Source: Magallana gigas
Taxonomy: Eukaryota
Reading direction: 5' to 3'
Assembly: GCF_963853765.1 (NCBI RefSeq)
Contig: NC_088858.1
Location: 33,728,001-33,792,000 of the forward strand
Length of the DNA: 64,000 bases
The position numbers were made by a program, and so were the translations under genes. The notes below the pieces were generated by a model. It worked only from the letters and a program-made list of their open reading frames with translations, had not been told where the DNA came from and did no database searches. This document shows positions 1,609-63,200 of the stretch, in pieces. The first letter of the stretch is position 1. Each line of letters begins with the position of its first letter.

Positions 1609-1837
1609 AGAAGAAAAATATATTAACAATTCCATAGCGATCAAAAAGCAGATCGACGTGTGCCTTAATCGTTACATGTAGCAAATGAAACGAGGGCCAA
1701 TCTTAAAGTAAGTATTACAAATTTTGTTCAAAAATGAATTGGAATCAGATCAAGATACCGTGATTTTTTTGATTTACTGTAGGTTAACCTTCCAATGGAT
1801 AAGAATCTACCAGCTGTTAAAGGTCGGGGTCACCTCA

Positions 1838-2290
1838 TTAAAAATCGTTTTCCTCCCAGCCATCCTCTTCTTCTTCCGGTACAAGCTGGATCATGCGCTC
1901 CGTGTATGTTCGGGGATCCTTTTCATAACGTTATATAAAATCTGATAGCATTTTGATTATCCAATTGTTAAATGTTTGACAATTTTAAAGCTGAATGGAG
2001 TAAATCGAATTATCCGGTGTCCGATCAAATATTTCTGATTGATTGTAAAATTCAGCAAACAGAAACTGAATTTCGTTTTTAATTTGATCAAAGAGGATGA
2101 TAAACACAATTCTTTTGAGATAGCCGAGAAATATTTGATAAACCCTAAAATTGATTGGCTAAGTTTGCATTTTCTGGACGCTGCCCAAACTTGCATGTAC
2201 CCATGCTTTCGCTTTTATCAGCATCTTCTCTTTAACCCATCTCGATAAATTTACCTTGAATGCAAAGTTACACACCTGGCTTCCAATACA
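1838..2290 (-). pseudogene. Unidentified decayed intronless ORF fragment
   Basis: One frame of 151 codons with only three isolated internal stops, ending ...RYEKDPRTYTERMIQLVPEEEEDGWEENDF*; family not recognised. Confidence 0.3.
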
Positions 2291-2549
2291 TACATGTACA
2301 TTATTTTTGTCATTGAAAGTTTTTATTTAAAAAAAAAATCGATGATATTAAATAGCAATATTATTTTAAATGAAAAAAAAAAACCCTAGAGAAATAAGAG
2401 ACAACAAACATATGCTGCGAAATATGGCTAATTGCTAAACATCTAGATAGTTGACAAAGGTTTAAGTAAATAGTTTCAAACCATTTGCTGTTTGAAAAAT
2501 GAATTTTAATGGCGATTATGTGAAAAAAAGTGCCATTTTGATAGAATGT

Positions 2550-2830
2550 GTCCCGGTTTATAGATCGAGGCGGGTATCTTTTAAGTATGTATAGCGAAAG
2601 TATGAGGGTCTTTTTTTAAAAGCGTAGGCGGTACAAGGGCAATTTCAGATATAGCGATTTGAGAAGCAATCGATAGAGGGTAGAAACAGAGCGAAGTTGG
2701 AGAATTTCCGGATACAAGGTGTACGCTCGTGGAAGACGCTAAGCAGGTGCGAGAGCAGTGTTTACATCTCCGAGTGTTTATTCATGACAAGTGATGTCTT
2801 CCTTCGGACACTTATTTCCGGGATTTTGAG
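2550..2830 (+). promoter_or_regulatory. Candidate promoter and non-coding first exon of globin A
   Basis: Locally CpG/GC-enriched block with GGCGGG at 2569-2574, ending in a strong donor GAG|GTAAGC (GT at 2831); upstream of the unpaired acceptor at 21300; exon start unknown. Confidence 0.35.
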
Positions 2831-3450
2831 GTAAGCGGTTTACACATACGGTATTTTGTAAATTTTAGAAGTTCGTCTTTATTCTCTTGTCTTTACTTAT
2901 GAATGCAAAAATATTTCCTGAATTAAAAAAAACATACAAACAAACTAGACGATTAAAAACATAATGTGCTTATGGTATTTTAACGCGGGTTTCAAAAATA
3001 TCTTCTGCAGAATTTTTCGCAAATAATGAGGAATGAAAAAAAAAAACCCATAAAGCACTCTTTAGAATCCAAAAATCGCATCAAACTTTAAATAGTATCA
3101 ATGATGGTATTTGCATTCGTATTTATTTGAAGAGCCTTTAAGCGGTGTCTCAATCTTTAAAACTATGTTGAAGTTGCATGTATGGTTCACCTTTGGAGCA
3201 TTCAAGGAAGTTTATCACGTGTATATATGCATACAAATATTTGAGAGAGAACAATTTTATCTCATACAAACCAGAGAATGCGACTCTCCTCCGGCGAATA
3301 TCGACGTGTGATTACTTTCAATCATTCACATACATGTAGCAAACTGATGTATGAGGTTGTTTCTTCTGGGCGGGAGAGGTATGTGAAGTATAATATCGAA
3401 CAAGTGTACATGGTTTTGGCAAAATTAATCTTCAGCGTGTAAGTGAAAGA

Positions 3451-3608
3451 NNNNNNNNNNNNNNNNNNNNNNNNNNNNNNNNNNNNNNNNNNNNNNNNNN
3501 NNNNNNNNNNNNNNNNNNNNNNNNNNNNNNNNNNNNNNNNNNNNNNNNNNNNNNNNNNNNNNNNNNNNNNNNNNNNNNNNNNNNNNNNNNNNNNNNNNNN
3601 NNNNNNNN
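3451..3608. other. Assembly gap
   Basis: Run of 158 N. Confidence 0.98.
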
Positions 3609-3972: not shown

Positions 3973-3973
<1 letters not shown>

Positions 3974-4356: not shown

Positions 4357-7178
4357 CTTTATAAGATTTTTGATATGCATCGATATCAATATTTATAGTC
4401 CTTTTTGCACAATAAAGGGCTTTTATTTTAAGAAGTAGTATTGATTGGAATGCAATTTGCTATTTTGGCATGAAGTACTGATATTGTCTCTAAAACAATA
4501 TTCTGCAATAACGTTATCAAAAAAGGGTATATTTATTCTACGAAAATTGAACTTTAAAGTCTGATAACATCTCAAGTAGTATGCAAATGGAAATGCATTA
4601 GCAACTGAAATGAATGGTCAATAGATAATAGTGGCGATATTACCGCGATAAGCAAATAACTACATGTATACGAAGGAAATATATTTGTTATCTTTGAAAA
4701 GTAAATTTATCTAAGGTTGTAACAACGTCAACAAATAAATTTGTAGTCACTTCCGAGCGGAAATATTGTCCTCCATTCAAGTCAACGAAAAGATTTTTTG
4801 TCTTTATCTCTAAAACATTCAAAAAGAAAACCTGTTTTAAAAACCTCAAACATATAAGATTATGATCAATATCTGAGATGAATAAAAAATACAATGCACA
4901 TGTTTTGACACCTATTCCCTTCACAATAGGCCTAACTTGAATGCAATAAGAAGCCTTGTTGGTCATCAGCATAATGCATTTACAATAATTGCATCACAAT
5001 TGAAACAGGCATTACTGCAGCATGTCTAAATCTTAGAATTTAAACTCATGGCATGGGGGAATCAATGGTTTCGGCACCATCAAGATGTGATAGATAAAAA
5101 AGCTCTGACGATGTTTAAAGGAAATCGGTACATGTATTTAAGTGTTAAAAGTTTCGAAAGGTCAAAACACGCTGTTTGTTGCAAAAGAGACAATTTTACA
5201 TCAATAATGGAGTATGGCGGATGATTGTAGTTAAACCACATGTTTATGTTATTTTTACACCTGCTGTTAATTATTTCTGTTTTTTTTTTATTTTGATTAC
5301 AACTGGCGTGGTCCAAAACCTGGTCCAAATAACGACCAAATAACCGCTACTATCAAAGGGAGTGCTGGCGTATGGATGGTTATGTATAATCAATTCTGCT
5401 GGAAATAAGATGCCTAGAACAAAATAGTTTGATAGACATCTGCAACAGGCTTAAGCAAGCATTTACTGAATGGGTACAGCTTTAATACTGAGGATAAAAC
5501 GCTACTGAATATGCGGCATTTGGAGGGGAAGATTTTTTTATAATAAAAATACATATCTGTGTTCAACATCACATCAATTAGATAGTGATTTAATCAATTA
5601 ACGGTGTAGAAAAACTGATTAAATGATCCCCGTAAGGAAATGGGGCTCAAGATATTGCAATTTGGATCGTGGCTAATGGATTTTTTCTCTCTCCCTAGAT
5701 ATTCTTTATTCAGAGATGTGAATTGCATCTCGGAGATAAATTGACCCATGCAGTTTTAACCACTTTAATGGGATTTCAGTGTTTATTTTCGAGAACCGTG
5801 GATTAGGCCATAAACCCATATCTGTTTTGTCTCCTGGTGAAAAATACTCTAATTAGAGCTGACTTCACAACGTTGCGTTTGCAACGAGAAATAAAACGCT
5901 AAATTCATTTTAAATCCATTTTATGTCTCAAAGCAATTTGAATGAAATTGCAGGTCAAATTAATTTAAACGCTACCAAGAGTATAATATATATCAAGAAC
6001 CCTGCTCATTTCCGTCCATGTTTTCTTAGCCGTTAACGTTGCATTAGTAGTTCAGTATGTCCGTAAAATCTTTAAAGGCAGTCGGTGCAATATCGATATT
6101 ATTTGTCTCGTCAAAATAAACATGCAAGCTAATTTCCGTATTGTACTAAAAAGATAAGAAACTTGGTTAATCACGGAGAAGGATTTTTAACTTCAATGCT
6201 ATGTTGATTTTTGACTTTTTATTAGATTTGTACTGTTGTTTAACTGACTTTCAAAATAAAAACAAGAAGGATATTTTTAAAATATCATTAGAATATGGCT
6301 ACAAATATTGACATGTTGAAACTAGCAGCAGTTTGATTTGAAGTTGTTCAAGACAGTCGGTGCAATATTGATATTTGTCCAATCAAAGTAAACAACCTAA
6401 CTAATTTTTGTGTAATAAAAAGAACAGGAATCAACAGAAATTAAAGTATCCTTTAGATACAATGAATGACAGGGCATCATAGAGTAGGAAAATATTAAAA
6501 TATTAACAACTTATACGTCATGTCGAATCTGTATTTTATATTGGATTTTATCATCACTGTAGCGTAAATGACCTTCAAAACAATCTTCATGAATATAAAT
6601 ATATTAAGTTAATAAAGAAAAATCCTTGGGGTTCTTCCAATAAATACTGACGCGCCGAAACTCACAGCAGTTTGATTTGAAAACTGCAAAATGCCAAATT
6701 TATAAATTGCAGAAAAGCTGCTAAAAACTGACAAGAATTTGTATCTGGTATTTGTCAGAGAGAAGTATTTGTTCTGAGTCTTACTGGTACTTGAGAACCA
6801 TTAATATTTACATAATTCTGTTATTGCATGTCTAACGGTATATCGTCGCTTAAGTAATTAACAAACATACAAAACACTACCAGGCACGGGGTATTAATGT
6901 GAACATGAAAATGCATGACGGATAATATAATCTATTGTTTTGTAATTGTCCAGCTCGCTTATGAGCTCAGAATTCTTATTGTAATAAACTTTTGGCACTA
7001 TCCCAAAACCAAAAGCTTAAATTATAACTCGACGTACTTTTCTTCACCTATGGGTGACTCGATATAGGAAAGACGCAAAATTGTTTTACCATTGGGAAAA
7101 TACAATACCCTTTTTTACCAATGAGAAAGGATATAATTGGAAAATCTGACATCTCTGATCAATTCTCAACTTAGAATA

Positions 7179-7428
7179 GAACCATTTTAACCTTGGACTT
7201 TCGGTTGGACGTTGCTATTTATTTCTTGCGTCAAAAAAAGTTAAAAATGACGCGGTTTAACAGTGTTTAAAGCAAAATGTGCACCGATTGCGTAGTATTA
7301 GCCCAAAAGCAAGACAAATCTTGTTGATTTCAAAGAGCCATGACTGAGTGGCAAGCAATGAAATAAACAGGCCTAAAATTGCTGTTTGGCACAACTACCC
7401 AAAGTCCAAGCTCTTGATAAAATGGTTC
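7179..7428 (-). mobile_element. TA-flanked MITE family 1, copy A (Tc1/mariner-type, non-autonomous)
   Basis: TA|GAACCATTTTAAC..TTGGACTTT ... AAAGTCCAAGCTCTTGATAAAATGGTTC|TA; ~30 bp TIRs; alignable to five other copies in the window. Confidence 0.88.
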
Positions 7429-10299
7429 TAAATCCATGTTTTGTACACAGTACAATACAGACCCTTTAAATCTGTATTTTTAGCTATGTCTTTCCTTCAA
7501 CATGGTGAAACTGATCGTGGATGAAATATAAAAACACCTCACGCTATATAAAAATCATTCTGTTATGATATAATGTAAATTAGATACGTTATTAACATCT
7601 GGTCATTCAAGCTCATGTGATTTCTCTATGTGAAAATACAGTAAACAGTTCTAATCAACATCAACGAATAATGGGATCCTTCCCCGAAAAATCCGACTTA
7701 TTTAGAAAGAATACTGAGTAGACCATAACAACTTATAAACCCCCTCAAAGAGTAATAAAATAAAAACAGGGGAAACCAAGAAATATTGTGGTTTGATTAA
7801 TATTCATGGGCATTAATTTTCGTGGATTAAGTGAAACTCGCAGTTTCAAGGATACGTTTGAGGTCGTTGCCAGTGATCCTATCAATACAATGAGCTGTTA
7901 GATTTTGCACTTGATAGTAAACACCAATTTTCTTGAATCAATATATCAACGAAATTGGCATTTAGCGCATATTGACAAAACCAATTTACTTAGTGTTTTG
8001 GGTTTTTTTTCTATTACAAAGGAATTTCTACTTTTAATTATCCTATTCCCAACAAAGTTCATGTTTTCAATTAATATATGGAAATATAATATCGGTCTGA
8101 GTAGGGCCCAATGTAGACATCCAAGTTCAATTAATCAAAAATCATACAAAGAAACATGTAACACATTGTATTGACCGTAGGACGAACAAGATGACCCCGG
8201 TCACTTGTACGAGTCCTAATTATTTTGATTCTTTTTGTCCCCTTTCTGATCTAAGCGTCTGGCCTGACCCTGGCCTTGATATGAACTGTATATACTACTG
8301 TACGTAAACTGAATCTATTTAGATATAGAATCAATAGCTATCTAATTTTACTGGCATTGCTCACACATATATACCGTCAAAACAAATTTGCTACATAGAG
8401 CATGCGTGCGTTCAGTTCCAAAAAAGGGCCACGACTCCTAGTCCTCTTACTGAACCCAGTCAAGTACTCAATTAAAATCTATACATGTAGGTCGAATACT
8501 GTAAAATGATTTATGTTTCTAAATAAAATTTTGTTCTCATCTCCCACCGGGGGAAGGATCATAAAAGAAGTTTAAAGATGGGGAAGTAGGGTGGTCATTG
8601 ATGTTCAGGATAAGCGTGGCCTCGAAATTTATAGACACTTCTGTGGAAAGTTCCATCTTTTACATACAAGTAATTACCCTCATAATTTTAATCTTGACCA
8701 AAGATGATGATATATACTTCAATCAAAAAGTCAAACAAGAAGAAAGATATTTCAAAACCCTTTGAACTCAGATTTGTAGAAACAAACACTCGCAACTTCT
8801 ATGGCATTTCCGGTAGAACCCGGAAGGTTTCTGCTACATGTAACAAACGAAAGGCCCGAGAAGTTACGATTTTATAGTGTGCCTCGGTCATGACCATTGG
8901 ATGACCTATTACTCACGCAATGCTGATGTCAGGCACTCTCCAACAAATATGTTGAAATCTATACGCCACGCGCCTTCACTCTTTATAAACGTGATGATCA
9001 TCTATGTATATGTCTCTTATTCTTTTACTCTGACTAATGTTACCCAGATTAATTGAACCGTACTTATGGTACTTATGATTAATATTACATCTAAAATTTG
9101 TCTTAATTGTCATAAAAGTATCTGTCTACCTTCCCTCTTCTCTACAAACCGTTGACGCAGAGTTTCATAATGGCTTATTTTGTACGTAGCAATGTATCAA
9201 GTTAGTGTAACAGTTGTAAAAAGCCTAGTTTAATACAGAGGCTCCCTAAACCTCTCTGTGCCGACTTTGTGTCTTATCTCACTCTCCGCAGCACTATCTG
9301 TCTCCGTGGCTGAGAGCCGGATACTCCGACAACTTGAATCAATTTGACCGAGATTTGAAGAGTTCGTAATAAGAATCATTTTCTAATATTCCTTTTATCT
9401 CCTCATGGATAATGATATAATCTTTTTTTCATAAACTTGAAAAAATGAAGATAATTAATATGGCTACTTTACGAGATACATTAGGTTTATTTTTATTTTA
9501 ACAAATGCAACCTGTAAATGGCGCACAGTTTTCGAGTTCCGAAGTAGAGCAAAAATGATTCGTATATTACTCAATGATAAGTAAAACAGCAAAACTTGCG
9601 CCTTTCAAATATCGACATTCCCGTTTCAAAGAAACGGAGATTTCCGTTTTTTAATCAGGCATGTAACTATCTGGGTCCATCAACTATCTATTTTTGCGGA
9701 AAACCGACCTTTTTTCGTAAATTTATGTACATGATATGTAATAAAAATGTTTTTTTTAACGACTTAGCCCCTCAACTTTTTGTCAGAGTATTAAGAATAT
9801 GAGGAAAGGTTACATGTAGATCAAATTTCTAGGTAATGATTCCCACCTCAAACCCCCCCTCCCCGGATTTTAGGATATTTTTTTTAAGGGTGAAAGGGGG
9901 TGGGTGGGTCTGGGACGCTTTAAAAATGAACGATGTTCCGTGCTTGTTTAGTTGTCTGCTCGTGAAAATGATGTTACACGAAATGACTGCTTTTTGTAAC
10001 GTCTCAAGAACAGCCCGAGACAGACAACAGTTGACAAAAGGAAATTGACATGTTTCTCTGCCACGGTTCAAAATGAATTACTGTCAAAAAAGATTTCCTG
10101 TTTAATAACAGATCACATCATATTACGAGGCTCTCGGCGGCGAGAAATGAACTCCTTCAAGAGCTATATTACTGTGTGCGAAATGTCGACCACTCGCCCG
10201 TCAATTGTAAGATGCTCCAGCAAATTAGATAGGTCGAAAAGGTTATTTTCTGCACCAGACGCATGACATGCAAGATACCCCCCTCCCTTAGTCGATTCC

Positions 10300-10686: not shown

Positions 10687-13223
10687 GTTAATATTTTGAA
10701 ATTTTTGATGATATATGTAAGTTACATTTATAAAGTAATTGATCATTATATCGAACTTCTGAAAATTGTTTTTTTAATGTCTTTTCTTTAAATGACACAA
10801 TTTACTGATTAGTGTTAGTTTACTTAAGCAATTTTGTAAAGATGTGACAGTTGGTGCAGGGGTTAGTTGGCGGTGAGTTGTTTTAAAAATCCTGCAAATT
10901 AGAGATAAAAACTTCAAATTCAAGATTAGCGGAAAATAATTAAACTTCTTTTTTGTGGGGGTTGAGGGTGCTCTCTTTCGCTACCGCACAGGCCTATGTA
11001 GGATTTGCATTTAACGTAATTCATTGCGCAGTAATGATGTACAGTGAATTCCAGACAACGCGAAAATTGGAAAATCGTTGTTTGTACATGTATGTTAAGT
11101 GGGCTATGTATTTCACAATAGCCTGTCAGAAGCTCATGAATAAATTTAGTTTCATACTGAGCAAAAGGAAAATGCAATGAATTTGGCGAGGGAGCCAGAG
11201 ATGGGGGCAGATGTCTACCGTGCTCCAGCTGTTCAGTGCTATATAAAAAACTCCCATGTTCGTAAAACTGTTTTACGATTATAGATAGGTTAATGGTTGC
11301 TTTTATAGTGCTCCTGATGGGGGTGTTGCATGAAATGCAACGTTTCATTTTCATGGTATCAACAAAAAAAGAAAGGCTGAAAAGATCGTTCGAAGAGCGG
11401 AGACTGTGTGACTTTTTCTAATTTAATTTTAAAACATATCCTTCATTTTAAAAAGTATGAGTTAGATTTGTAATAAATGATAAATACGACAAATTTTCAC
11501 TCGAATGACTAATAGGGCTTTTGTTATAAACCAATCTTACTATCATCAAATGAAACACATGCTTCCTTGTATTAAAGCAACGATGAATTTGTACTTATTA
11601 CTTTTTTAAGTCGATTTGCTTTTTAACATTTGCCCAAACATTGGCCGGACTGGCCGTCAATTTATCGCCTTATAACTCTTTTGATCCCATTGTTTAGTTT
11701 TCGGTTTTATTGATTTAAAAAATAGATGTTTGTCTAATTAAGGATAATACATGTAGCAATTAAACCTAAATATATTTCTTCCAAAAAAAAAGCTTAGTTG
11801 TGTTTATATAGAAAAAAAATGGATTTATAACTCACTGCGGTGTTATGACGGATTAAAACGTATTTCATTCTACATGTGAATAATAGTGCTATTTTGGGTT
11901 TTATTTAAGGAATAGAGGACTGTTATGGGGATAAAAACACGAGTCATGATTCCTTATTACCAATATGTACATTTTAAAATCGTACTTATCATTAAAATCA
12001 TAAACAATTACAAACCAATCACGTGATGCTTTGGACAAACCAATTTAAGGCCTCGTGCCAGTCATCGTTCTGTTGAACCATAGAACAAAATTTTATTTGA
12101 AGTTCATGATGGACACTTTTCAAGCGAAAAAGAAAAAAAGAGGACTTTTTTGTATTTAGTATTCTTATGTGGGGTTAGACAAGAATACAATTCAATCAAT
12201 ATAAAAGATTCGTAAAGAAATAATCAGAGGTCAAAACGAGGTTGCATTGATACCAGTCCAGATTTTAAAATATGCCCTTAAAGTGCAGCATCTGAGGTTC
12301 AGACCACAAACCACATTAACCACCACATAGATTTCAATTAACCAACACTAAACCAACAATAGCAACACTATTTCAGGAATTTCTTGGCTTTTCTTACTCT
12401 TTATTTTATCAATAAGACCGAAATAATAATGTTTTCATACACCATTCTAGCTGAACATGTATTATTCTTTAGATAACTAAGGTTATCGGGATGTCTGTTG
12501 GTAGCAGGAAGCAATGAGATAACCTTGATCCGCGTTCAAGTACAAGTATTACATGTAAATATTAGGCTCAAAGAGAGAAAGAGAGAGACGGAGGATTATG
12601 AAGGTGACGACATTTGTTTTACTTCCTGTCAAAAAACCTTTACTTTTAAAATCAAAACATCCTTATCAAACATATCTTCTAAAGAAAAAAACATTAATTC
12701 AGTCATGTTTTGACAGCATGGAAATAATAACTTCCGGAATAGAATTAGCAATATGGATTTTATCCTTCACCATTCATGTTACCAACATTCATTCCGTTCT
12801 TACTTCCGATGTATATTAATTTAGCTGTTACTCCAACTTACGCGGTTGCAATTGCCTTTCTTTCAATTCTGTTTTTCAACAGAGGGGCCTTTCTGGTCCA
12901 GTAATTGTTATCGATTTTGGTGTTATAGACAGAAAGATTTTGTAAATTCCATCTGAGCACCATTTTTTGTGCCAAGCGTCATTAATTGGAGGTTTTAGCT
13001 CTTTAGAACAACGGATTTCTTGCCAAAGTAAAGTCTTGGATCAATAGAAACTTAAAACTTACTGGTGATCTGCTAACTGAGGCATTTTATTGCACGTACA
13101 ATTTTTATATTTTTTTTTTGTCAGCCAAGTAGACGCATATCTATATTGCATCGACGCAAGCATTTCGTTTTACATTATCATTACTTATCCATCCATCTTT
13201 TACTCTGAAAACAACTTGTTTTA

Positions 13224-13409
13224 GAACCATTTTAACATAGTTTGGACTTTCGGTAGTTGTGTCAAACAGCAATGTGACGTAGGTCTGTCTATTTCATTGC
13301 TGACCACTCAACCAAAGCTCTGTGAAATCAACAAGATTTGTCTGGCTTTTGAACTACGCAATCTGTGACGCAAGGGTCCTATCGAAAGTCCAAGGTCTTG
13401 TTAAAATGG
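13224..13409 (+). mobile_element. MITE family 1, copy B (internally deleted)
   Basis: TA|GAACCATTTTAACATAGTTTGGACTTT ... AAAGTCCAAGGTCTTGTTAAAATGG; ~60 bp shorter than full copies. Confidence 0.82.
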
Positions 13410-14064
13410 GGGTGGGGGTGGGGGTTTCAATAAAGAATAGTTTTTATTATAATATTACTTTTCTTCAAACATCATCCGGGCTTTTTCATCCAGTTATAAT
13501 TACAAGTCACGAAAGTGCTATTACTGATTCCATCTACTGACAGCTGTAACTTTACCATTAAGCTGTTGCCTTAATGGGATCAAAGAGAATGGTGGCTACT
13601 GTACTGATTTATATTGTCGGGTGATTATCTAAATAAAGGAAAGTGTTCGGGTCAAAGAATTGATCAAAACTATCCCCATCATTGAAACTTCCGGAAGAAG
13701 TGGGGATTACTCGTCTTCTCCGACCGGTTAGAATCGATTTCTTTCTTTCAACATATTTTGTACACTTGTTATTCCAAATTGAGACACGATCGGCTTCGTT
13801 TAGTTGTACGTCAAAACGACATTATTTTGAGTTTTCCTCATGTGTTCATATAAATCAATCAATACACCTTTGAACTTTAAATTTCTTTACTTTGGAATTA
13901 AAAATATATGGACTGGGGTTTTTTTTCAAGCAAAATTTAGTATGTCATGTGACAACTCCCGGTTTCTGACATTTATTTTTTACCTTGATACATGTAGCTC
14001 ATCCCGGTATCCATGATTTGACTATAATTGTTAACATCAATTATATTCATTCGATTTCTAACAT

Positions 14065-37199: not shown

Positions 37200-37593
37200 C
37201 AGTGCCGATCAGACCCAACCTAACACCAGAGCAGACCCCAACTACATATAAACCCCATGTTTACTTCGGGGTTAACTTAGCGTTTACTGTCGGTCTGCTT
37301 TTTGAAAATTTGCCTCCACTTGGGGTTTACTTTGGGTTTACTTTGTGTTAAATCGGGGTTTTGCTTTTGGGGTCCACTGTACGAACTGAAGTGTGAAGCA
37401 GACCCGCCTTTTATCTTCCAAATACACATGTAGCGTCTGCTTTCATTCTGATTGGGGTTTACTTTCTGTGTCTACTCTGGGTTTACTTTGGGTTTACTAT
37501 GCGTCCACTCTAGTAAACCCGGAGTAAACCCAAAAGTAAACCCAGAGTTTAGTTGGGGTTTACTTTCCGTTAGGTTGGGTCTGATTGGTGCTG
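37200..37593. mobile_element. TA-flanked MITE with CAG...CTG termini and internal GGGTTTAC repeats
   Basis: TA|CAGTGCCGATCAGACCCAACCTAAC ... GTTAGGTTGGGTCTGATTGGTGCTG|TA; at least 9 exact GGGTTTAC/GTAAACCC motifs. Confidence 0.88.
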
Positions 37594-37649
37594 TACATTG
37601 TGAGGGGTCTCGGGTAAATATTTCATTATTAGCGGAAGATACATGAATA

Positions 37650-37912
37650 TGGAACGCCTCAATTGCCTAATGTGATTATCTTCATTATTTGATGATACAT
37701 GTACTTCAACATTACATGCTGATACTTTAACATTACATGCTAATATTTTAACATTGTATGGGGATACTTCTTCATTTATATATGATACTTTATCATGAAG
37801 TATCATCATGTAATGTTAAAGTATAAGCATGTAATATTAAAATATCAGCGTGTAATGTTGAATTATCATCATATTATGAAGATTATCTACATTAGGCAGT
37901 TGAGGCGTTCCA
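37650..37912. mobile_element. TA-flanked foldback MITE with ~125-bp arms and ~22-bp sub-repeats
   Basis: TA|TGGAACGCCTCAATTGCCTAATGT ... ACATTAGGCAGTTGAGGCGTTCCA|TA; the arms align along their length. Confidence 0.88.
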
Positions 37913-38593
37913 TACATGAAGATTAAGAATAGAGTACAATCATGTATTTTTGAAATATCGGTCAAAAGGGGTTATCAGAGGTACATATGTTACCTCCCCT
38001 TCCCCCTCAGAAAGCTTGTACAGTTCTTCATAGCCAATGGTCTTCGTAAATGAATTTGAATCACGTGCGTCTCTTTGAGCACACCTGAAATATAGAGTTT
38101 TTAAGTATACATTGTTTCATTATATGCATATAATTTACATTTTACATACTATACAATTGTTTTAAAAAAATATGAAATTATTATTTGAACATATGCATAA
38201 CAATCGATTTTGATATGGTATTTGTATTTAATACATAAAGGCACTTACGTGCATTACATGTACGCGTCCACTCGAGTTCTCCTGCAGTTATGGTTCATTT
38301 TGAATTTTCCCTTTCTTGTCTCCTCTCGCTTTTTAACAGTAATGAATGTACTGACCATCCATGTGATGAGGTGCTAGCGTCAGACTCACTGCTTCACAAA
38401 TGCCCTCTTTCTCGTGCCGTTAGAGCCTTTTTTTGTTCCAGTTTTAATATGAAGTCTCTCTATTTTTACATTTTTTAAAAATATACTTTTGACCATCAGT
38501 TGTCGTTTAGTATCTGAATTGAAAGTAGATGTAAGGTTTATTATAGAAAGAGATTCCGCTTATGCAGACATGTATTATGCTGTATTTTTCTAA

Positions 38594-49912: not shown

Positions 49913-51482
49913 CAGAGATACGAAAGATAACATATATTGCGTAAGAATGAGTGTTTATGGCTGTTCTCCTAAGTGCTGTATATTGAACATGTGTGGCGTA
50001 CTTGAATTGCTCGAAAATTGTTTTGTTATTGAAATATAATAAAAGATTTGCGTTTGCATCAATGTCAATACAATACGCAGATGCTGGCGAGGTGAACAAA
50101 TACATCATAATATAGGAAAAGCCCTACTGTCGTCCTTCTATATATGAGACTAATGGGGCTGGTTGCGTAATACTTGCACACATAATTCAATTTTAAATTT
50201 TACTTTCATTCATATAAATGATTGTACTACAGTGATATGGCTTATATCACATTCAGAATGCAGAGGCAAAACTTCTATTTCGAAAATCATGACAACGAAG
50301 ACCGAAAAGTGAATAAAAGCTGCGAAATGCGGCCATTAATCTCCCAATATTTGATTGTCATCTTTCGTTAAAATGGGTTTTCTTTCCTATGCTTAACGAT
50401 TAATTGAAAGAGAACGGAAGTTCCGCGGTAACGAGACCAGAAAATGTGTCGAGGGATCCAGTGGCTTCGTAAACCATGCAGGAACAAAACTATCAAATGT
50501 GTGTTGCCTGCTCATAAATCAAAATTACACGATAGAGAAGTGTGCTGTGGGTTGACGGTTTAATGAAAAGGGTTTGGTTTGTTGGACGCAATTGGAAATT
50601 ATTTCGACAAAAATACATTTATCTGCTATAAAACAATTGACATCATTATGTAATATAGAAAGTTTTTTTTGAAAACGGTTTGATATTTCAAACTCCTCGT
50701 TGCAATGATCTTAAGCCATGATCACTGTGGAATAGATACACGTTTTCATAAAGCCATTGCTTTTGCATCGTTTCTTCAATGTTATCAATGTCAGACCAAA
50801 TAAAAAAACAGAAAACCAAAGGAAACGGACTGGGGAAAAAGATAATTTTGTATGATTTTGGTTAATTGATAACGGTGTATGTATCTTTCTTCAATGGTAA
50901 CTGGAAATGAAATAATACATGTTTACAATATGCGTCCATTAAAACGGATTGCAATCATACGGAAGCCATTTAATGGCAGGTGAAAAAAATGATTTACCTG
51001 TCGGAAGCCAGATAAGTACATGTGCTTTATACCCTAAAACCATATACACTATTTCTTCTGGAACTCGATTATACTCGATTTGATATCTAGTTCATACCCG
51101 AGTTTGAATCGAGTTCGACTCTCGCTCTTAGGTGGGTCAAAACTCTTCAACATTGAGGCGAAGGTATTGTTGTATCAAAATTACAAATTGGCAACAAGTG
51201 GGAGTGATGAAAACTGTAAAATTAAGTACAATACACATACTTTAACAATTTTGAAGTACATGTATTGAGTTATCAGTCAAATTTACGAAAATTAAGCTTC
51301 AACTATAGATGAATGTCAACAATCGAACACGAGGAACAGATTTAAAAAAAAGATTTGGCATTTCACAATTTTCTTTAAAAATGTTTGCGTGCAAAATGGA
51401 CAAGACGTCTAGATAAGATTTATATTTCTCTCGGGTGTTGACAATTATGACTAATAAAAGTTTTTGACAGTCAATAATTTAT

Positions 51483-52214: not shown

Positions 52215-52960
52215 AAATCTTCGTCCCTCACCGTCCATCATCCGTCAATATTTAATAATTTAAATTTTTTTAACTTCCACTTGAAAACTACAAGGCCAAT
52301 GGTTACTGTTTTTGTTGTGAAGCATCTCTACATGTATGATAAGAGGAATCTAAATTGTGAAATTCATGACCGTACCAACCCACCGACCTCAGCATGGGCT
52401 AGACCAAATTAAAAAAAAAAGGCAAAATTTTCAAAAAACTTCTTCTGTACTTCCACACATGTGGGAAAAAACCCTAAATGCATGGTTATGATGTCCTTGA
52501 ACCCTTTAATTAATTTAATAAAATGAAAATTTTTTTAGCCCCATGGTCAAAGGCTAACTTGAAGACTTTTACAGCGGAGCCAAATGGCTACACATTTGTA
52601 TGATAAAATGTATCAAATCTTAGAAAATCTTCTCTACGCTTATAAATTATGAGGTCCAAAAAGCCCTCTACCTAAATTGTAAAATTCATGGCCTCAGAAT
52701 CATGAGTTCAGGCTGTATGGGGTGGGGCTACAAGGCCATATAGCGAAAATGAGTTTAATGTTAGAAATCTTCTCTCTTATGATATCTATTTGAGAAAACA
52801 CTTGATGCATGATTATAATGGCCATGAAGCAATGGCCAATATGCCCAAAAGTAAAAAATGTTTGAAATTTTTCTTCTGTACTTTCATAGCAATGGGAGAT
52901 AAAGTAAATTTTTTTATGTCTTTAATGTCCTCTTCTTAAATTGTGAAATTCACTGTCCAA
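52215..52960 (+). repeat. Degenerate ~150-170 bp tandem array, Helentron/HINE-type internal repeats
   Basis: CGTC-type microsatellite remnant at the start; recurring anchors AAATTGT(G/A)AAATTC (52352, 52673, 52939), AAA(T)CTTCT and GCATG.TTAT.ATG.CC. Confidence 0.55.
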
Positions 52961-53020: not shown

Positions 53021-53556
53021 TTTATTAGGTCACTTGAGTCGCTCGGGTAACCTTTTGCCGTTGGATGAGCGTTGTCTGTAAACTATTTTGCATTTCTAGC
53101 TTCATCTTGAAATCTACAAGGTAAATTGTCACTTGGTCATATTAAATTAAATATATGTTTTATTTTTTGGAATCTTCTTTAATTTACTGTGCATTGTTTT
53201 TTTACTTGTAGCAATAACTTTACGCACGATTTGTGCGTTATAAATGAAATACTAGTAAGTATGAATATTTTAAAAGATTGACCAATAAAGGTCTGCATGT
53301 CTCTTTCTACCAAAAGTTTACAGTTTTTGCCCCTGGAGCTATGGTGCAGATAATCCAAGATTTCTCCGATTACTCCCCATCCAACCCCTTTATAAATTAA
53401 TGCTTGCAAACATCAAATAATAAATTAAAGCAGGCTAACAGTCAGTGTAGTTTCGAATAAGTGTTTAGACTCCTAAATAATGCATGAGACTCCCTGGCAG
53501 GTCCATCTCAGGGCTTTGGTACTAAGGTGATCATCAAGGCCTACGGGCCTCTTGTT
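53021..53556 (+). mobile_element. Helentron-associated non-autonomous element (HINE/DINE-like)
   Basis: 5' TTTATTAGGTCACTTGAGTCGCTCGGGTAACC hairpin, 3' subterminal AGGTGATC, terminal hairpin AGGCCTACGGGCCT followed by CTTGTT; this architecture is typical of HINEs. Confidence 0.75.
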
Positions 53557-55523
53557 CATGAAGACTGCTAAGTAAATGTAACGGAAGTAGTCATGTTACA
53601 TGACGTAATGTACACTGGGGCGGTAACAACCAATTAATTTATATACCATAGATATATTAATCAATTTTCTCGGATGTTATCGTACCACAGTGGCTGAAAG
53701 ATGTTTACTTTTATTACGGTTACCTAGGCTAGGCAAGTCTTCGGAAAATTGGAAAGCATGAAAAGAAAGCAATACATCTACTGCGATTATTGCCAACCGG
53801 TGTTTGTTGGTCTATGGCGAGCATGCTGGTTGAAGATAGAATTGCCATGTTAATAGAAATGTCTGTATCTATCTGAAAATGCGCGCTTATTATTGACTCT
53901 TAATGAAATGAATAAAGTTATCTTTTGTGCAAAATTATCGTGTATGTTTAAAAGATACATGTATTTCACAGATACCTGTTATATGCTGGCTCTTCAATAA
54001 AGGTAGATATATGGGTGTGTAGTAAATCGAGAGTAAAATAATTTTATGGGATGATTCAAGTACACCAATTTCTTTTTGAAAGTGTTGAAAAATGTAAAAG
54101 TAAATAATTTCCATTTGCCCTTATGGGAATACCTTGTTTCTAAACTTATTTTCAATTCTTTCAACCATTCAATGAATCTTAAAACACTAGTTAGTAATTT
54201 GATATCTATTTGAGAAAACATCCATGCAAGAAATTCTAAAGTTTTCAAAGAGAAAAAACTATTGGAGTTAATATCAACGTCTTTGATTCAAGATTCGTTT
54301 ATTAAAGCCTACCTATACGTAACATTTTATAAATGCACAATACAGTCAAATGTCTTTCATCAAACAGTATACTTGAAGAACTGTAGCTCAACGGGAAATT
54401 TGGGTTGACAACACGTCAACACAAATATCTCGTGATGCTACAGTTCTGTGGCTAGTCAAACAGCCACATGTAGTAACATTAATTTTGAATGTGAATAACT
54501 CTACATTCGGTTTCTATCTCGTTTCAGATATAGTCTTTAACTTGGATGTTTATAATATTGATGGTATATTTAAATATTAAAATATTTTATGACGAATTAA
54601 ATTTAACAAAAATCGTTTATTTTTTAATGGTTTGAAACTCATACGTAATAGTTTTATTGCGAGAGAGAATTAGCACGATGGTTCTAAAATTTATACTAGC
54701 ATACATATATATATAAGTATGTACTATAATGTAATGAATTGCTTATATTTCTCATTTTTCAAGTATAAAGTAACGTTTAGAAAACAAAATTAATTGGCGA
54801 TATTTTTGTTGTTAAATTTGTGCCTTGATTGAGTTTTTTGCCCCCCTACACAATATTAGAAACGTCTACGGTACCGAGTCAAATGATACACGTTTGCTCC
54901 TGAATAAAATGTTCTTTTAGATGCAGTACAGTTGTTAAAATAGCTATTAGGTTGTCTACCTTTTAATCTACTGATTTTTGATAAAGGTCGAGATTATTTT
55001 TTTTTGGTGTATCCTTGAGTGCGAACAGGGCAAATAGCAGGGATTCTTGGCCAACAGCAAAGTAAACAATCTTAGATTAAAACATTACGGCCACAGTGTA
55101 TCACTTTTCCAGCATTTCACCTCGAGTGTTAGAGGGGAATTCCGTTAAACAAAAGTTAAAAGATAAAAACTAATTAACACTGTTATACATGTATTTTAAG
55201 ACGTCTTTGCATTGAATACAATAAGAACAATTTGGTGCATACGTAAATGTATAAAGTCCGCCATGACACATAGATATTATACACAATTTAATCCCTCAAA
55301 TAACACATGGTAATTATAACCAAATTACTTAATCGCTATGTGTATACCACTGAGATATATTCCTTAATTCCAGGTCTTCGGGGGATGCCAATGATGATAA
55401 TGATGAGTTTTTACATTAGACAACGCATTCATGGGCAAACCCGAGTTTCCTCAATAAAAGAAGAATTAGCATCCAGAATCGGACACGAGTTCCGTTGTTA
55501 GTCGTGTTAGGACTCGTTTTTTT

Positions 55524-55820
55524 TTACTCCGGTTTTGTGCTATTTTCGATTTTTGGAACGCCGCTTTGGTCTGACGACGGAACTCCGTTAACTTGATCAG
55601 GTTGTTCGTTTTTTCCAGGTGATTTTGTGGACTGTTGATCGGAGCTCGTTACAGGTGATTTTGTGGACTGCAGTTCGTAACACTGATTCTTGTCCAGATA
55701 GCCGTGACTCAACGCCGAGAGTATGAAGTCGATTGTCTTAGTGTAGACGTTCGCCATGTAATCTGTGTAGCGATCTCCGAGAGTAATTTTCACAGCTTCC
55801 AGAAACGGTTCTTTGATTTT
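55524..55820 (-). CDS. GbXL: Globin B (globin X-like paralog), last coding exon: helices G-H plus ~55 aa disordered tail
   Basis: TTCTTTCTCCCTCCAG|AAA ATC; KIKEPFLEAVKITLGDRYTDYMANVYTKTIDFILSALSHGY...KPE*; phase 0; shares PFLEAVKITLGDRY with globin A. Confidence 0.95.
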   Translation of the reverse strand, partial: KIKEPFLEAVKITLGDRYTDYMANVYTKTIDFILSALSHGYLDKNQCYELQSTKSPVTSSDQQSTKSPGKNEQPDQVNGVPSSDQSGVPKIENSTKPE

Positions 55821-58800
55821 CTGGAGGGAGAAAGAAGAAAAGATTGGTAGATAAAGATTGTTAGAGTTGCAATAGCAATGGTGATGCATATTTGAACTCT
55901 CTATAGGGAATCAATAATGTTTGATCTTTCAGAATTTTAATGCTTCAAATGACAGGCACATCACAATATCTCTGACTTCGTTAACAGTACATAATTCAAT
56001 ATTTAACCTTTGTAACATTTCGCTGAACATGAACTATTAAATCATATATGAGATATTTCCCAACGCCTCTCTCCCCCCCCCCCCCCCCAAAAAAATGGAA
56101 TGAGAAAATATGGCATTATAAGCTATATAGATGCACTAATTGAATTCTTTTGTTATTGTTGAATGCATGCTATTGCATGATATACATACGTAATTGACTT
56201 TGATACAAGAAGGGCGGAAAGCGACGACACCAACCCTTTGAGCATAAATGTTTCACAAATTAAAACATTTAAAGTAAATCGAATCAACTTTAATGGCCAT
56301 GCAAATCATTAACAAAGATCAGTTTTAGAAAGTGTACTCTCTGATGTATGCGTTCGTTTTTTCACACCAGAAACGAATGAAATACCGTATGACGTCAACC
56401 CAACTAAAATAAATTGAAATAATTTACTTGATTGGTTGCTAAATATTTTTTATATCAAACAGAACAAAGATGTTTCCTTTGGAGAATGATACTTCAAACG
56501 AGTTCCCAATTTTCCTTTAGCTAAATAGTTCAGAAAGTTTTATAGCCAATTTCAAATAACTGGGCTAAGTAGTAAAACGACGTCATTGTAGAGACTTTAT
56601 AATCTTTCATTGTACTATACAATAAAATTCATGAATTTTTTCGGATAAAAAAATGAAAGCTTTAAGCAATACATGGAAACGCCAAGTATTGTTTTTAACA
56701 GTGAACACTTAAGTAAAGTATGTACACACAACATTTCTCTCCTTTTGATATAAAACTGAATGTACAACTTGTAAAAAAAAAACCAAGATTGGAGGCACAA
56801 TTGTGAAGGGTGATTTTATCATCGGAATTTCTTTTCAAGAATAAAATTCCACTGGAAATGAGTATGAGTATATTGTTACATGTTTTATTGTTTCATTAAA
56901 AAAAAAACCTTTGAATGGATGGTCGATTTTTTTTTTTATAGAAAAAACGTTGTTATTGGTCCAGTTATTGGCTATTGATAAAATAGGATCGACGAAGCAA
57001 ACGTTTTCACAGATAATATCTTTTTTTGGGGGGTCATTTCGTTGGAAGAATTGATTAAATCAGAGTCGTAATTATCCCTCACGAACCGTGATCAAATTTT
57101 TTTCCTCGCCAAAAATGACGAACTCCGGTAAAACAGATGCACGTCTGTCCTCGGTCGACTGCGCGATCGGTTTAAGAGAGTGTCCACCAATCGACCCTTA
57201 TAAACACTAATCTCATTGACCAGGATCGAAGCTCCTCACTTTATTGCATTTATTAATGAGATTTTGTCTATTTCCCATTTTCTTATATGACCGAAAATGA
57301 ATAGGAGTAGCTTCAAATTGACTCGAGCAATGAATATGTGAACATAGAAAATTGATGATGGTTGTAGCGTTGACACTCGCCAATACCATTTCGCGATCGG
57401 GAAGAAAAGTTCTAAATAGGAATCAATAACAGACCAGACCAGGAATTCTTTCCTCTTTTTCCAGAATAAGAGGTTGAAGAAAGGGACAATTAACCTCCAT
57501 GATCAAACGGATGAACAAATTTCTATTAGGGCAATATTTCATATTATTTTAATTGTATGGTTTACTAAACAATTAAAATTTTCAAAGCATTTATGGAATC
57601 AACATGATCTTTTTAAACGAAAATGTGGGCTTTCGGGCTGTGGCGTAAATGTACTCTTTTGTGTGTTGTTATTTTAAACGATTTTTACCAATTGATTAGA
57701 ATCAAATCATAGCGCAATGTCTTGCCCGCCTCATGAAGCGAGGCTTAATGGTAACACGTAAAAAAAAAATCGGTGAAAAATGAAAGTTGAATCAGGGTGC
57801 TAAGTGCTAAAAATTTTCTTCCAGCTCATTGGCACCGCTTGTCGATATATATTGCCCCTAAATTCTATTAAAAAACTTTCCAATGTTTCAAGCTAACTTT
57901 AAAGTAATTTAAATGAAAATGATTGACTGTGCAAATCAGTGCTTTAACCAGGAGATACGACTTGTTTCACGTATGTTCTATCGGATTGTTATGTTGAAAT
58001 GAAAAAAAACCAAAAACATTAAGAAATCGATCTTTTAGATATTAAATAGACTAGTTAGCGAATTTTAATTCACAATTAATATGCTTCTGATTAGACAAGC
58101 GGATTCAAATAAATGTATGTGTTTCAAACTTTTTATTTTTTCTGTTTTGTACTGTCTCTGATTTCATCAAATAATTTGCGCTTGGTCACATCATTTACAT
58201 ATTATAACTAACTCTATTTTTGGGGGGGGGGGGGGGGAGGGGGGGGGGTCTGGTGTACCTGTAATGCTGCAGCTTTTGTCAATACTATTAGTCATCCTAA
58301 TCATTAACAGTTTGTATAAAAGTCACGAAAATTTCAATTGACAAACAGAGATGAAAACACAGTGCTTTAAATTCAAACAAACTTAATCAAATTGAACCTT
58401 TTCAAAAATTCATGGTAAAAAAGGTCATTACTGTATATTGAGCGCTACTTTGCGACATTTTAACCATTAATAAAACAAATTTGTTGATCATCCTGCACGT
58501 TGATGTACGGGTGAATAAGTTTTGCTTTGTGAGCCCTTTTACAAAGAAAAAACATGTTATGGTCCTCTAACTCAATAAACCATCTTTGAAATCGATTCAT
58601 CGACTCTCTTGCTCCAAGACTGTTGCCCCAACTCTTTTAAATTATTTACTTAACATGCTTCATGAGATTCATCACAGCTATTTGAGGGGAAAACATAATG
58701 CAGGGGTAATGTTTTTCTCATTCATCGCTCAATATAGACTATCCATTTACCAATGTCGAATAAAGATAACCGTTAGAGAGCTTCGCATCAATTTACAGTT

Positions 58801-59624: not shown

Positions 59625-59857
59625 AAACCATATTAACAAGGCCTTGGACTTTCAGTAGGACGTAACTGTCTATTTCTTCTGTCAAAACAAGTTTAAGATG
59701 AAGCTGCCGCTTGTTTTAAGCGAAATATACACCGATAGCTCAAAATTGTTGATTTCAAAGAGCCATAGCCGAGTGGCCTACGATAAAATATATAGGCCTA
59801 AGTCACATTGTCGTTTGGCACAACTACCCAAAGTCCAAGCTGTTGTTAAAATGGTCC
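59625..59857 (-). mobile_element. MITE family 1, copy E
   Basis: AACCATATTAACAAGGCCTTGGACTTT ... AAAGTCCAAGCTGTTGTTAAAATGGTCC|TA. Confidence 0.85.
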
Positions 59858-60049
59858 TAGTGTACTGTCTTTGCTAATGAATTCTAATCACACGAAACAC
59901 TGTCAAACTAAACGAGTTGTGAACGCGATGTATGCAAAACATGGATGATAAAATTAATATGTTACAAGTATAACTTAAAATACTTTCGCGCCCTCTTCCG
60001 TGTCAGCCCTGGTTTCCCATATTCCTTTGCATAGCGCCATTCCTATATA

Positions 60050-60298
60050 GAACCATTTTAACATGAGCTTGGACTTTGGGTAGTTGGTGTCAAACAGCAT
60101 TGTGACGTAGGCCTGTCTATTTTATTGCTGGCCACTCAGCCATTGTTCTTTGAAATCAACAAGATTTGTCTGGCTTTTGAGCTAAAACTACGCAAGTGGT
60201 TATATTTCACTTGAAATCAGTGTCATTTTCAACCTCTTTGACGCAAGAAATAGATAGTTACGTCCTACTGAAAGTCCAAGGCCATGTTAAAATGGTTC
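60050..60298 (+). mobile_element. MITE family 1, copy F
   Basis: TA|GAACCATTTTAACATGAGCTTGGACTTT ... AAAGTCCAAGGCCATGTTAAAATGGTTC|TA; inverted relative to copy E. Confidence 0.9.
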
Positions 60299-63200
60299 TA
60301 TCATTGTAAAATTTCGAATATAAAATTGACCAGAAATACATGTATGTACTTGATGATCAAAGAGTGTTCGCGCTTGTTAGTTTGTTATGTAACAATTACT
60401 CTTGTTATTGTGTTAGATGTCTGCTTTTGTCCATAAATAAGTATTGATAAAGGATCATTCTTGATGGAACGTTAATGCTGAGTGGATTTGACCCAGGGCC
60501 AAATTAATCGGGGAACGTCTTGGCGGAAACAGTAAAATAAATGTCAATAACTTGATACTCTTTGATGGAAATCCTTGCGGATGGACACACACGCCTTTGT
60601 AACATAATTCGCGCCAAAGTTGTGGGTAATGGTAATGGAATGGCAGCTATAACTGATCGATCATCTATATACATGTAGTATTCATTTATATAAGTCTTGC
60701 GTAAACACAAAAAAGTCTTACAATAATATTCCTTTTTGACTGGCCCTCTTTTGTTCTATATGGCGCATTTCAAAACATGCTGGCACAGTGTTATGTACAA
60801 AGAGTCCAAAGAACTATCTTCCCTAGTAAGGGATTACAAGCAGATCGTATAATTATGTAAATCCGTGGGTGGCCAAGCTACCAAAGAACAATCCCGTTAA
60901 TGTTATGTCTACCTTGAATCTGACTACATCTTAGGTTACCTTGGTCTCAAATTACCAATTTATGTGGATTAATAAAAATTAGTTGAAATGATGCGCAAAT
61001 TCTAGATCAACGATCCTTTTAATAAAAACTTTCATCAAATATATTTTTTGGATGGACATGTAATTTTAAATATCTCTTAAAGAACAATACCTCCGAAAAT
61101 GGATGGAACTTCGGTATCTAAAAGACCAAGCATATAGGTGCTTGAGAACAAGACCCCCTCTCTAATGTTAACTCACGGGGTACATGACTTGCATGTCTTT
61201 TTATACGCTGGTTGGGGGTGTTTTCACAACAAGTAATTCAATTTCCCTTATTGATTTTAAGATATTTTGGAAGGGACATGTTGGGTATACATGATTAAAA
61301 ACGAATTTCTATCAAAGGGAGAATCAACTGCCCCTGGAATCAAAACCTTTGAGGAGAGGGGGGGGGGGGGGGGGTGGTGCCCTTTCCTCAAGCACCTGTG
61401 GGACCAACAGAATAACAAGGAACGTGTTTTACTCCCTCTTATGTCAAACATTTCTCCACAAAACAATCACTTGTTTTGTTTTAAACCCCAAAGCAGACAA
61501 TTTAACGTATCCATGTATAGTGGGTGCGGAGGATGACAGCATTACAGCCAGTAATCACTATAAACATGCAAGGTCTTATAGTGCTGCGTTGGATTTTCTC
61601 CTTTTTTATCTACAATTAGTGCCTTGGTATCGTCTTCAGAATTTTCACCAACGACTTCTGCAAAATAGAGCCTTGCGTTTGGAATAGAATTATTTTATAG
61701 AATTATTTTTTTTTAAAGAACTTCATTTGGGGACCATTGAGTAAGATAATCAATAAAAACCAATAATGTAATAATTAGGCTTTCCACAGTCAGGAATTAC
61801 ATCTCCAGCATCGTTCGCTAACTTAGTAGAGTAAAAAAAAATCTGATCAATGACATATTAAGCTTTGGTCCCAATAAAACCTAGAGATGCGGTATAGAAT
61901 TCTGTGGCAGACTCTACTAACTTAAGTGCTGCAAAGCTTATGAAAACCCTACATTTGTGTTCTTAACTAGGTTTTATAGAATACGTTTTGTATACAAATT
62001 GAATTTCTTAGGCATCCATAATCCACCCATTCCTACAGGATGTGCTGAAAGCGTGAAGTGATACTCGTTGAGAGGAAAAAAAACGGAACTTTTTCCTGGG
62101 TATAAATGGCTTTATTGTAGCTTTAGCGTCAAGTCTTATTATAGTTCGAAACTAAGGAATTGGATAAAACTGAAGAAGAATTGGAAATGTTGACTTTTGA
62201 TGTATAGACATTATCCTCTAAAGATTTGCTATTGCACAATACCGTTAACTAAGATTTTTTATTCGGGGAATGGTAAGTTTAAAAAAAAAGTTTATCGCAG
62301 TTTTTTCCCCACATAGATGATGATGGCAAATTCATCCTTCGGAGACATCAGCTTCATGAGAAAAAAAATCACTAGATAGTTAATTAGCTAACATCATTCT
62401 AAAATGTCTATCTTAAAGGTCACTGATGCAACACCGATACAGTATTACAACAAACACAAACAATTGTGAAATACAACACACATAAGAATTTCACAGCCTA
62501 AAATATCGGAAATGCAGTAATCCTTGTATGTAGATCGTGCTTGTAACATTCTTGCATTATTGTTCCACGATAATTGAAAAAAAAATAATCAATTGATTCA
62601 AATTAAGGAGGAACAGAAAGGTATGTTAAATTTTCATGAAACGAAGGAAAGATCGCGAGCAAAAAACCGATCAAAACTCGATCTATGGATAGAAAAAAAA
62701 TTTACAATAGCGTCTGTTAGCATACTGTTGAAATATTTATTTAGTAGATTTGAGTTATTCATTATTATGCGAATTTTAAGAGCGATAAAAACAAAGGGGG
62801 GGGGGGGGGGTAAATCAATACAGAACCTGATGGCGAAGTTCATTGTGAGGAAGGAGTGTATTGCCTTAAGGTTTGAAACTAAGTTTTCGTGACTTTACAG
62901 TTAGTCATACGCTGGTTTATGCTGAGCTTTAGTTCTGCAAAGATCTGCCTCGTTGTCTCTTGACGAATTAATTACAAATCAGGAAAGGAGTTTTTTTTTT
63001 AATTGATTCTGCTTTCACAAAAGACTTTGTAAGATTTGGGCATCGTACTACGAAAAAATAAGTACCACGAGAGGCTAAGTATACCAAATTATTTATTTTC
63101 CAAATAGATAATCTTTATTTCGCCACACAATCAGCAAAAAATTTGAAGCCATATTAGGTATGTTTATTTCCATTCTTTGAATCACCGACTGGAAATGACT

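Follow-up and report, generated by a model that had tools for sequence, protein, structure and literature searches.

A palindromic octamer as the probable scar of Tc1/mariner-type transposon excision in an oyster genome

The palindromic octamer TACATGTA stands out in a 64,000-nucleotide stretch of the Magallana gigas genome (C6:33,728,001-33,792,000 of the assembly, referred to below as the window), where its copies lie within the introns of two globin genes and in intergenic DNA. We propose, with a probability of roughly 0.8, that most of these octamers are scars at the donor sites of Tc1/mariner-type transposons, cut-and-paste elements that target TA. A first-pass annotation of this DNA had put forward the excision-footprint interpretation, which gains support from several lines of evidence: (i) the word is strongly enriched; (ii) it originates by the insertion of 6 bp at TA; (iii) it belongs to a set of three palindromic classes, all beginning with C; (iv) it is polymorphic among haplotypes and decays; and (v) its flanks show a base preference. 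An element with the right ends is also present in the window, and we infer that a transposon once occupied each scarred site. The mechanism of footprint formation is already known, while the scale and uniformity observed here seem to be new; our literature search found no link of TACATGTA to bivalves.

The octamer carries a TA at both ends, and the unscarred allele or repeat-family consensus has one TA. In the proposed route, an element with CA...TG ends would enter a TA dinucleotide and duplicate it, giving TA-element-TA. On excision, the transposase would cleave the 3' ends at the border of the element and the 5' ends two bases within it, a stagger suggested by the 2+2 retained bases, leaving each flank with TA and a 2-nt 3' overhang; end joining that retains both overhangs would then yield TA-CA-TG-TA, a net gain of 6 bp at the old TA. 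The scar would be neutral, drifting by substitution, being copied within its host repeat and offering its own TAs to renewed hits, and elements with CC...GG and CT...AG ends would give rise to the less frequent siblings TACCGGTA and TACTAGTA.

Abundance and distribution of the octamer

The window holds exactly 39 copies of TACATGTA, the first at 1673 and the last at 60670-60677, in agreement with the approximate hand count of the first-pass annotation and with the positions that it implied. The excess claimed there, over an expectation of about 2 to 3, is likewise borne out, since dinucleotide-preserving shuffles of the window contain 1.73 copies on average (maximum, 6) and Markov models of order 1, 2 and 3 predict 1.6, 2.8 and 4.3, respectively. 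With homopolymer and dinucleotide runs set aside, TACATGTA is the most over-represented 8-mer of the window, and it is also the top non-simple 8-mer of a 200-kb sample composed of loci at fixed positions on chromosomes C1-C4 (82 copies versus 8 expected, occurring in 19 of 20 loci). The count over 264 kb is 121, compared with 14.3 expected. In the 564-Mb assembly (29 contigs), the word occurs 225,258 times, and the same letters read backward occur 75,442 times. Given that TA makes up 9.0% of positions, the TA dinucleotides that bear the octamer amount to approximately 0.44% of the total.

The shorter words nested in it behave differently. CATG is mildly over-represented in the window (340 versus 289), but CATG, ACATGT, TACATG and two 7-mers all return to expectation once the 39 full words are subtracted, which assigns the excess to the exact 8-mer. 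Similarly, TACA and TGTA half-sites with zero spacer are found 121 times in 264 kb, whereas each spacer of 1 to 15 bases is found 8 to 29 times. The spacing of the octamers in the window is Poisson-like (coefficient of variation, 0.95), and the flanks of all 39 are mutually unrelated; only the site at 37696 lies in a repeat detectable within 350 kb of comparison sequence, the flanks of the other 38 being single-copy. Two runs of N in the assembly (1477-1608 and 3451-3608) are free of the octamer, with the nearest sites at 1673 and 3331, and, the finding being one of dispersed 8-mers, continuity across these runs has no effect on it.

The sites are as follows; every row is an exact match to TACATGTA, with the strand given as '.'.

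1673-1680, unique flanks
2291-2298, CA next
3331-3338
4661-4668
5129-5136
8482-8489
8835-8842
9811-9818
11085-11092, TG before
11748-11755
12550-12557
13989-13996
14374-14381
15509-15516
18068-18075
19001-19008
24848-24855
27116-27123, single-copy depth
27872-27879, within the region 27676-28518 with a 6-letter indel
28090-28097, within the same region
29679-29686, in 11 of 11 haplotypes compared
30843-30850, contigs of 4 runs without indel
31228-31235, contigs of 4 runs without indel
31292-31299, contigs of 4 runs without indel
32234-32241, 40 bp beyond globin exon 3; contigs of 4 runs without indel
34077-34084
35061-35068, part of the compound TATGTACATGTACATA (half + full + half scar)
36974-36981
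37696-37703, 6-bp insertion at TA; about 25 sister foldback copies have TA
38255-38262
44762-44769
47503-47510
48147-48154
51257-51264
52329-52336
53956-53963
55186-55193
60337-60344
60670-60677, in 5 of 5 covering haplotype contigs

Two further words surfaced in these counts. The reversed word ATGTACAT is itself enriched, in the window 11 versus 3.4, and at least part of its excess comes from the motif followed by CAT (TACATGTACAT), i.e., from compound scars. In the 200-kb sample, the palindrome ACTATAGT appears enriched (24 versus 3.2), which is accounted for by a block in which inverted and tandem repeats are nested, rich in AACTATAGTT, at L034:740-2090 (G000:C1:30000001-30010000); ACTATAGT is thus repeat-borne and no scar.

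Insertions at TA among repeat copies and haplotypes

Repeat families allow the state of a site with and without the octamer to be compared directly. The site at 37696 lies in a foldback repeat:

37648-37914, strand '.', foldback repeat bearing the scar at 37696

The window copy of this repeat has GATGATACATGTACTTCAAC at the place where about 25 copies elsewhere in the genome have GATGATAC------TTCAAC, and the site is therefore a clean change from TA to TACATGTA relative to the family. The first-pass annotation had recognized an exact 6-nt insertion by setting the two arms of the foldback against each other; the insertion holds against the sister copies, but the comparison of arms is not exact, as the right arm has one further substitution. 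The foldback repeat is itself contained in a larger repeat of about 3 kb (L003-L030), in which two TACATGTA are common to at least 13 members, and at one of these shared sites a single member has a plain TA (13 versus 1). Shared sites of this kind mean that an element can pass on, and multiply, a scar that it bears.

An all-against-all BLAST comparison of 350 kb gave 21 private insertions, too few for the purpose, and variable-gap pattern searches of the genome were used instead. All genomic copies of a miniature inverted-repeat transposable element (MITE) with GAACC...GGTTC ends in which a conserved TA is followed immediately by 1 to 12 additional bases were listed, giving 29 insertion events across four TA sites: (i) GGGTA^GTTGTG, with 10 events, including CATGTA, CTAGTA, CCGGTT and four TA duplications; (ii) GTCTA^TTTC, with the events CATGTA and GTA; (iii) GTGTA^TA^TTTC (site e), with 12 events, among them TACATGTA twice, TACCGGTA twice, TACTAGTA once, TACTATTA and TACCTGGTA; and (iv) GACTA^CGCAATC, with five events and zero hexamers. 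A control junction without TA in the same MITE had two duplication-like insertions and no scars. Six-base insertions at TA number 11, of which 8 form perfect TA-C.-.G-TA palindromes (CATG four times, CCGG and CTAG twice each) and a further two deviate by a single base; the chance per random hexamer is 3/4096. The intact copies at site e number 326, and a diverged member supplies a third TACATGTA; three in about 340 copies with two TAs each correspond to 0.44% per TA, which equals the genome-wide rate. Altogether, six independent insertions convert TA to TACATGTA relative to a repeat-family consensus, the kind of indel among repeat copies that the first-pass annotation had suggested looking for.

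Other small insertions occur at the same MITE sites. The commonest is the change of TA to TATA; one copy with GTGTA^TATTTC has a 6-bp TTATAA between the two TAs, creating the 10-nt palindrome TATTATAATA, and at several sites CA is added directly after TA. The TTATAA insertion or the added CA may represent another type of scar.

Haplotype contigs of other oysters, reached through two globin exons, provided 10-11 contigs over about 6 kb. At a site that lies past the end of the window by about 0.5 kb, one haplotype (L062) has TA where five others have TACATGTA, and four places within the window vary around related forms:

28517-28523, strand '.', TACAGTA; 5-bp CAGTA insertion at TA relative to L059; polymorphic, scar of the 3-nt-overhang type
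28836-28843, strand '.', TACTTGTA, one-mismatch form; L059 has exact TACATGTA, the remaining contigs read as the window
29173-29182, strand '.', TACATTTTTA; other haplotypes have TACATTTGTA (TACA+TT+TGTA)
61225-61236, strand '.', decayed motif CACA-ACAAGTAA; other haplotypes have TACATGTA (five) or GACATGTA (two)

At 28517, L059 reads TA and also has no adjoining MITE. The 8 extra bases at 29173 are absent from two contigs, of which L060 has TA and L059 has TT, and the site is a polymorphic scar with filler. Three alleles segregate at 61228, namely TACATGTA, GACATGTA and the A-ACAAGTA of the window, which combines a deletion with a substitution. In the region 27676-28518, beside the sites at 27872 and 28090, contig pieces of three of four runs have a net deficit of 6 letters somewhere; among the records compared there, 11 and 18 are shorter by this amount and 1 is not. 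The haplotypes thus show one polymorphic indel of TACATGTA itself, with TACAGTA and TACA-TT-TGTA as polymorphic variants. The first-pass annotation had named as refuting outcomes substitution differences in place of 6-bp indels, or conservation like that of a transcription factor site; what was found is that 6-bp indels distinguish the states with and without the octamer and that existing motifs drift by substitution, and are thus not conserved in the manner of a binding site.

Drift of this kind can also be read from the one-mismatch neighbours of TACATGTA, which number 82 versus 54 expected in the window and 238 versus 167 in the 200-kb sample. If decay is neutral, the ratio of neighbour excess to exact excess, about 0.8-1.0, would correspond to about 0.1 substitutions per site since origin. 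As a separate observation, the stretch at 28517-28527 is a TATATA run that shows two TA-targeted events relative to L059 (the CAGTA insertion and, 4 bp away, the MITE) and looks like a local hotspot.

Beside TACATGTA, two of the 16 possible TA-xy-y'x'-TA palindromes are enriched in 264 kb, TACCGGTA (8 versus 1.5) and TACTAGTA (11 versus 3.0), with genome totals of 23,286 and 26,930, respectively. The recurrent six-base classes are therefore the three palindromes TA-CA-TG-TA, TA-CC-GG-TA and TA-CT-AG-TA, all C-initial; C is likewise the first base of Tc1 and mariner termini. The siblings in the window are as follows:

20430-20437, strand '.', TACTAGTA, sibling scar class
26478-26485, strand '.', TACCGGTA, sibling scar class
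48657-48664, strand '.', TACTAGTA, sibling scar class
53250-53257, strand '.', TACTAGTA, sibling scar class

The half forms TACATA and TATGTA together show a small excess over the same 264 kb (379 versus 326), and TACAGTA with TACTGTA is barely enriched (63 versus 54). The compound words TATGTACATGTA (5) and TACATGTACATA (3) sum to 8, where a rough estimate of chance gives about 1.5; such compounds fit either renewed targeting of the TAs within a scar or variant repair. With the two sides of 121 sites pooled and compared to all TA, T is raised and A lowered at position +1 (T, 0.44 versus 0.36; A, 0.16 versus 0.34; chi-square 36), and T is raised and G lowered at position +3 (T, 0.45 versus 0.36; G, 0.07 versus 0.16; chi-square 18). 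The resulting pattern, A.A-TA-T.T, resembles the target preference of Tc1 and Sleeping Beauty.

Source elements, alternatives and known systems

Two kinds of TA-flanked elements in the window are relevant here:

37199-37594, strand '.', Tc1-like MITE, TA-CAGTGCC...GGTGCTG-TA, right ends for a TACATGTA scar
7176-7436, MITE TA-GAACCATTTTAAC...GTTAAAATGGTTC-TA
13221-13367, same MITE
17767-18017, same MITE
28522-28781, same MITE
59626-59868, same MITE
60045-60302, same MITE

The first of these had been claimed in the first-pass annotation as a TA-CAG...CTG-TA element at 37200-37593, and it is real, with borders at 37199-37594. It is a non-autonomous element with an inverted repeat of 28 nt (89%) and unrelated outside flanks, and candidate copies in the genome number at least 1,424, with identities of 70-78%. 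The second, an abundant MITE of about 260 bp with GA...TC ends, of which five were counted in the window, reaches a contig depth thousands of times that of single-copy DNA; its copy at 28528-28778 is polymorphic, being missing from the haplotype contig L059. Scans for terminal inverted repeats around TA-flanked CA, CC and CT elements returned many nested or false pairs. Two candidates (in L037 and L038) were rejected as interior parts whose inverted repeat runs past the TA, and an apparent element at 49-713 was not used, as its inverted repeat reaches further (31-731).

Several considerations weigh against excision as the origin of the octamers. We know of no organism reported to have scars at 0.44% of its TAs, a density that implies very many uniformly repaired germline excisions. 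On the side of the elements, (i) the scar expected from the abundant GA...TC MITE, TAGATCTA, is not enriched (4 versus 3.3 in 264 kb), which suggests that this MITE rarely excises or is repaired differently; (ii) the scans for TA-flanked elements identified none with CC...GG or CT...AG ends; and (iii) no locus occupied in one haplotype and scarred in another was found in the about 6 kb of 10-11 haplotype contigs, nor an occupied element among the site e copies with C after TA, both being very small samplings. On the side of the scars, (iv) the population indels, compared without an outgroup, may be either gains or losses; (v) some genomic octamers are inherited in repeats or satellites, so that 225,258 exceeds the number of independent events; and (vi) the commonest footprints reported for Tc3 in Caenorhabditis elegans are TACATA and TATGTA, not TACATGTA (bioRxiv 10.1101/659086). 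The stronger proposition, in which germline excision was sustained at an unreported scale and channelled almost always into one repair route that retains both 2-nt overhangs, with scars acting as preferred sites of re-insertion (and so giving compounds such as TATGTACATGTACATA), is one that we advance tentatively and regard as somewhat less than an even bet.

Among the alternatives, the one nearest to the excision reading is that a hexamer is added at TA by break and repair without any transposon, e.g., by a stereotyped fill-in at the lesion of a TA-specific nuclease or topoisomerase. Insertion at TA is demonstrated while the transposon intermediate is inferred, no small insertion is more common at these sites than the change of TA to TATA, and the most abundant TA-flanked MITE has no matching scar, all of which such a process would accommodate. 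However, no process is known to us by which CATG, CCGG or CTAG would be added along with a second TA, whereas TA + xy + y'x' + TA is exactly what a duplicated target and inverted-repeat termini predict. The variants TACAGTA and TACA-TT-TGTA match known types of footprint, all three classes begin with C in the way of Tc1/mariner termini, and the flank preference is similar to that of Tc1 and Sleeping Beauty. We therefore consider transposon-free repair unlikely.

It is very unlikely that the excess stems mainly from copying, i.e., from the presence of the word inside amplified repeats and satellites. Copying does occur, as satellite arrays on C1 (periods of about 31 and about 76 bp) contain TACATGTA and the repeat of about 3 kb has passed two octamers to at least 13 members, but 38 of the 39 window sites have unrelated single-copy flanks and the sites of the 200-kb sample are spread across 19 of 20 loci.

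A functional role, with TACATGTA as a selected palindromic cis-element bound by a dimeric factor, would explain the perfect palindrome and the sharp specificity for the exact 8-mer, and in Phytophthora a MYB-related factor is reported to bind the same word as a promoter motif (PMC11134190). Yet the octamer arises as a private 6-bp insertion within transposon copies, and its siblings TACCGGTA and TACTAGTA arise alike at the same TA sites. It is unconserved, in that haplotypes have three alleles at 61228, differ by a substitution at 28836 and vary in its presence through an indel. Its spacing is Poisson-like, and its one-mismatch neighbours are enriched as neutral decay predicts, leaving selection for a binding site with a very slim chance of being the explanation.

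Substitution bias, whether by CpG decay of TACGTGTA and TACACGTA or by context-dependent mutation, has next to no credit: oyster DNA is CpG-depleted and CATG is mildly over-represented, but dinucleotide-preserving shuffles yield 1.7 copies, the precursors are unenriched (one copy each of TACGTGTA and TACACGTA), for which reason CpG decay was rejected as the origin, and repeat copies and haplotypes differ by a 6-bp indel rather than by substitutions. Two other transposon-related origins were also rejected, as hAT-type hairpin footprints would yield site-specific palindromes and not one word, and the site pairs do not bracket elements as a strict 8-bp target-site duplication would.

Excision by Tc1/mariner-type elements, to return to the preferred reading, can be set beside three documented systems. 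Tc1 and Tc3 leave footprints with 2-bp overhangs (bioRxiv 10.1101/659086), and the oyster scars share with them the duplication of the TA target and the terminal CA/TG kept at the donor site, with a CAGTG-ended element present in the window. They differ in that the commonest Tc3 footprints reportedly keep one overhang, whereas the dominant oyster form, TACATGTA, keeps both and the half forms are in little excess; furthermore, the C. elegans footprints come from individual loci, while the oyster genome would hold about 2 x 10^5 scars of germline excision, whether fixed or still segregating. The canonical footprint of Sleeping Beauty, TAC(A/T)GTA, arises from 3-nt overhangs through non-homologous end joining (PMC7827188). 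It is likewise made of a TA duplication and end nucleotides, and the oyster has one polymorphic TACAGTA/TA site at 28517, but the oyster scars mainly retain 2+2 bases, and the TACAGTA and TACTGTA words hardly exceed expectation. Finally, a comparison of Asian and African rice revealed 94 putative excisions of DNA transposons, most with deletions or filler and 8 of them 'perfect' (PMC4423477). Both studies compare related sequences to recognize excision sites or footprints genome-wide; in contrast to rice, the oyster scars are uniform, a single 8-mer being the top non-simple word, and can be read from one genome.

Excision is the normally hidden half of cut-and-paste transposition, since insertions get counted and departures do not. 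If the proposed origin is true, a single genome would constitute a dated and family-resolved record of excision, with the CA/TG, CC/GG and CT/AG classes kept apart, from which ratios of excision to insertion and the mode of MITE amplification would become directly measurable. The roughly 2 x 10^5 readable and uniform scars would make it possible to map former element positions and to date scars by their decay. The scar classes could be compared to extant families, with an abundant but scarless MITE bearing on how MITEs amplify, and the share of transposons in the small-indel polymorphism of a highly polymorphic bivalve could be measured. For motif discovery, the top over-represented 8-mer of this DNA should not be counted as a regulatory word.

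Globin genes and other variation in the window

Two globin genes with long introns lie in the window, and their exon 2 and exon 3 segments were identified by Pfam Globin matches on open reading frames and by tblastn of one paralogue against the other (46-59% identity):

29820-30050 and 32039-32155, strand +, globin gene
63381-63623 and 55527-55830, strand -, globin gene

The octamer is absent from these four located exon segments; the claim of the first-pass annotation that none occurs in globin coding exons stands for them, the first exons not having been located. Elsewhere among the haplotype contigs, long runs of G at about 61240-61380 and about 62800 differ in length in every contig, and a 34-bp indel at 62814 and another indel at 63149 segregate among individuals.

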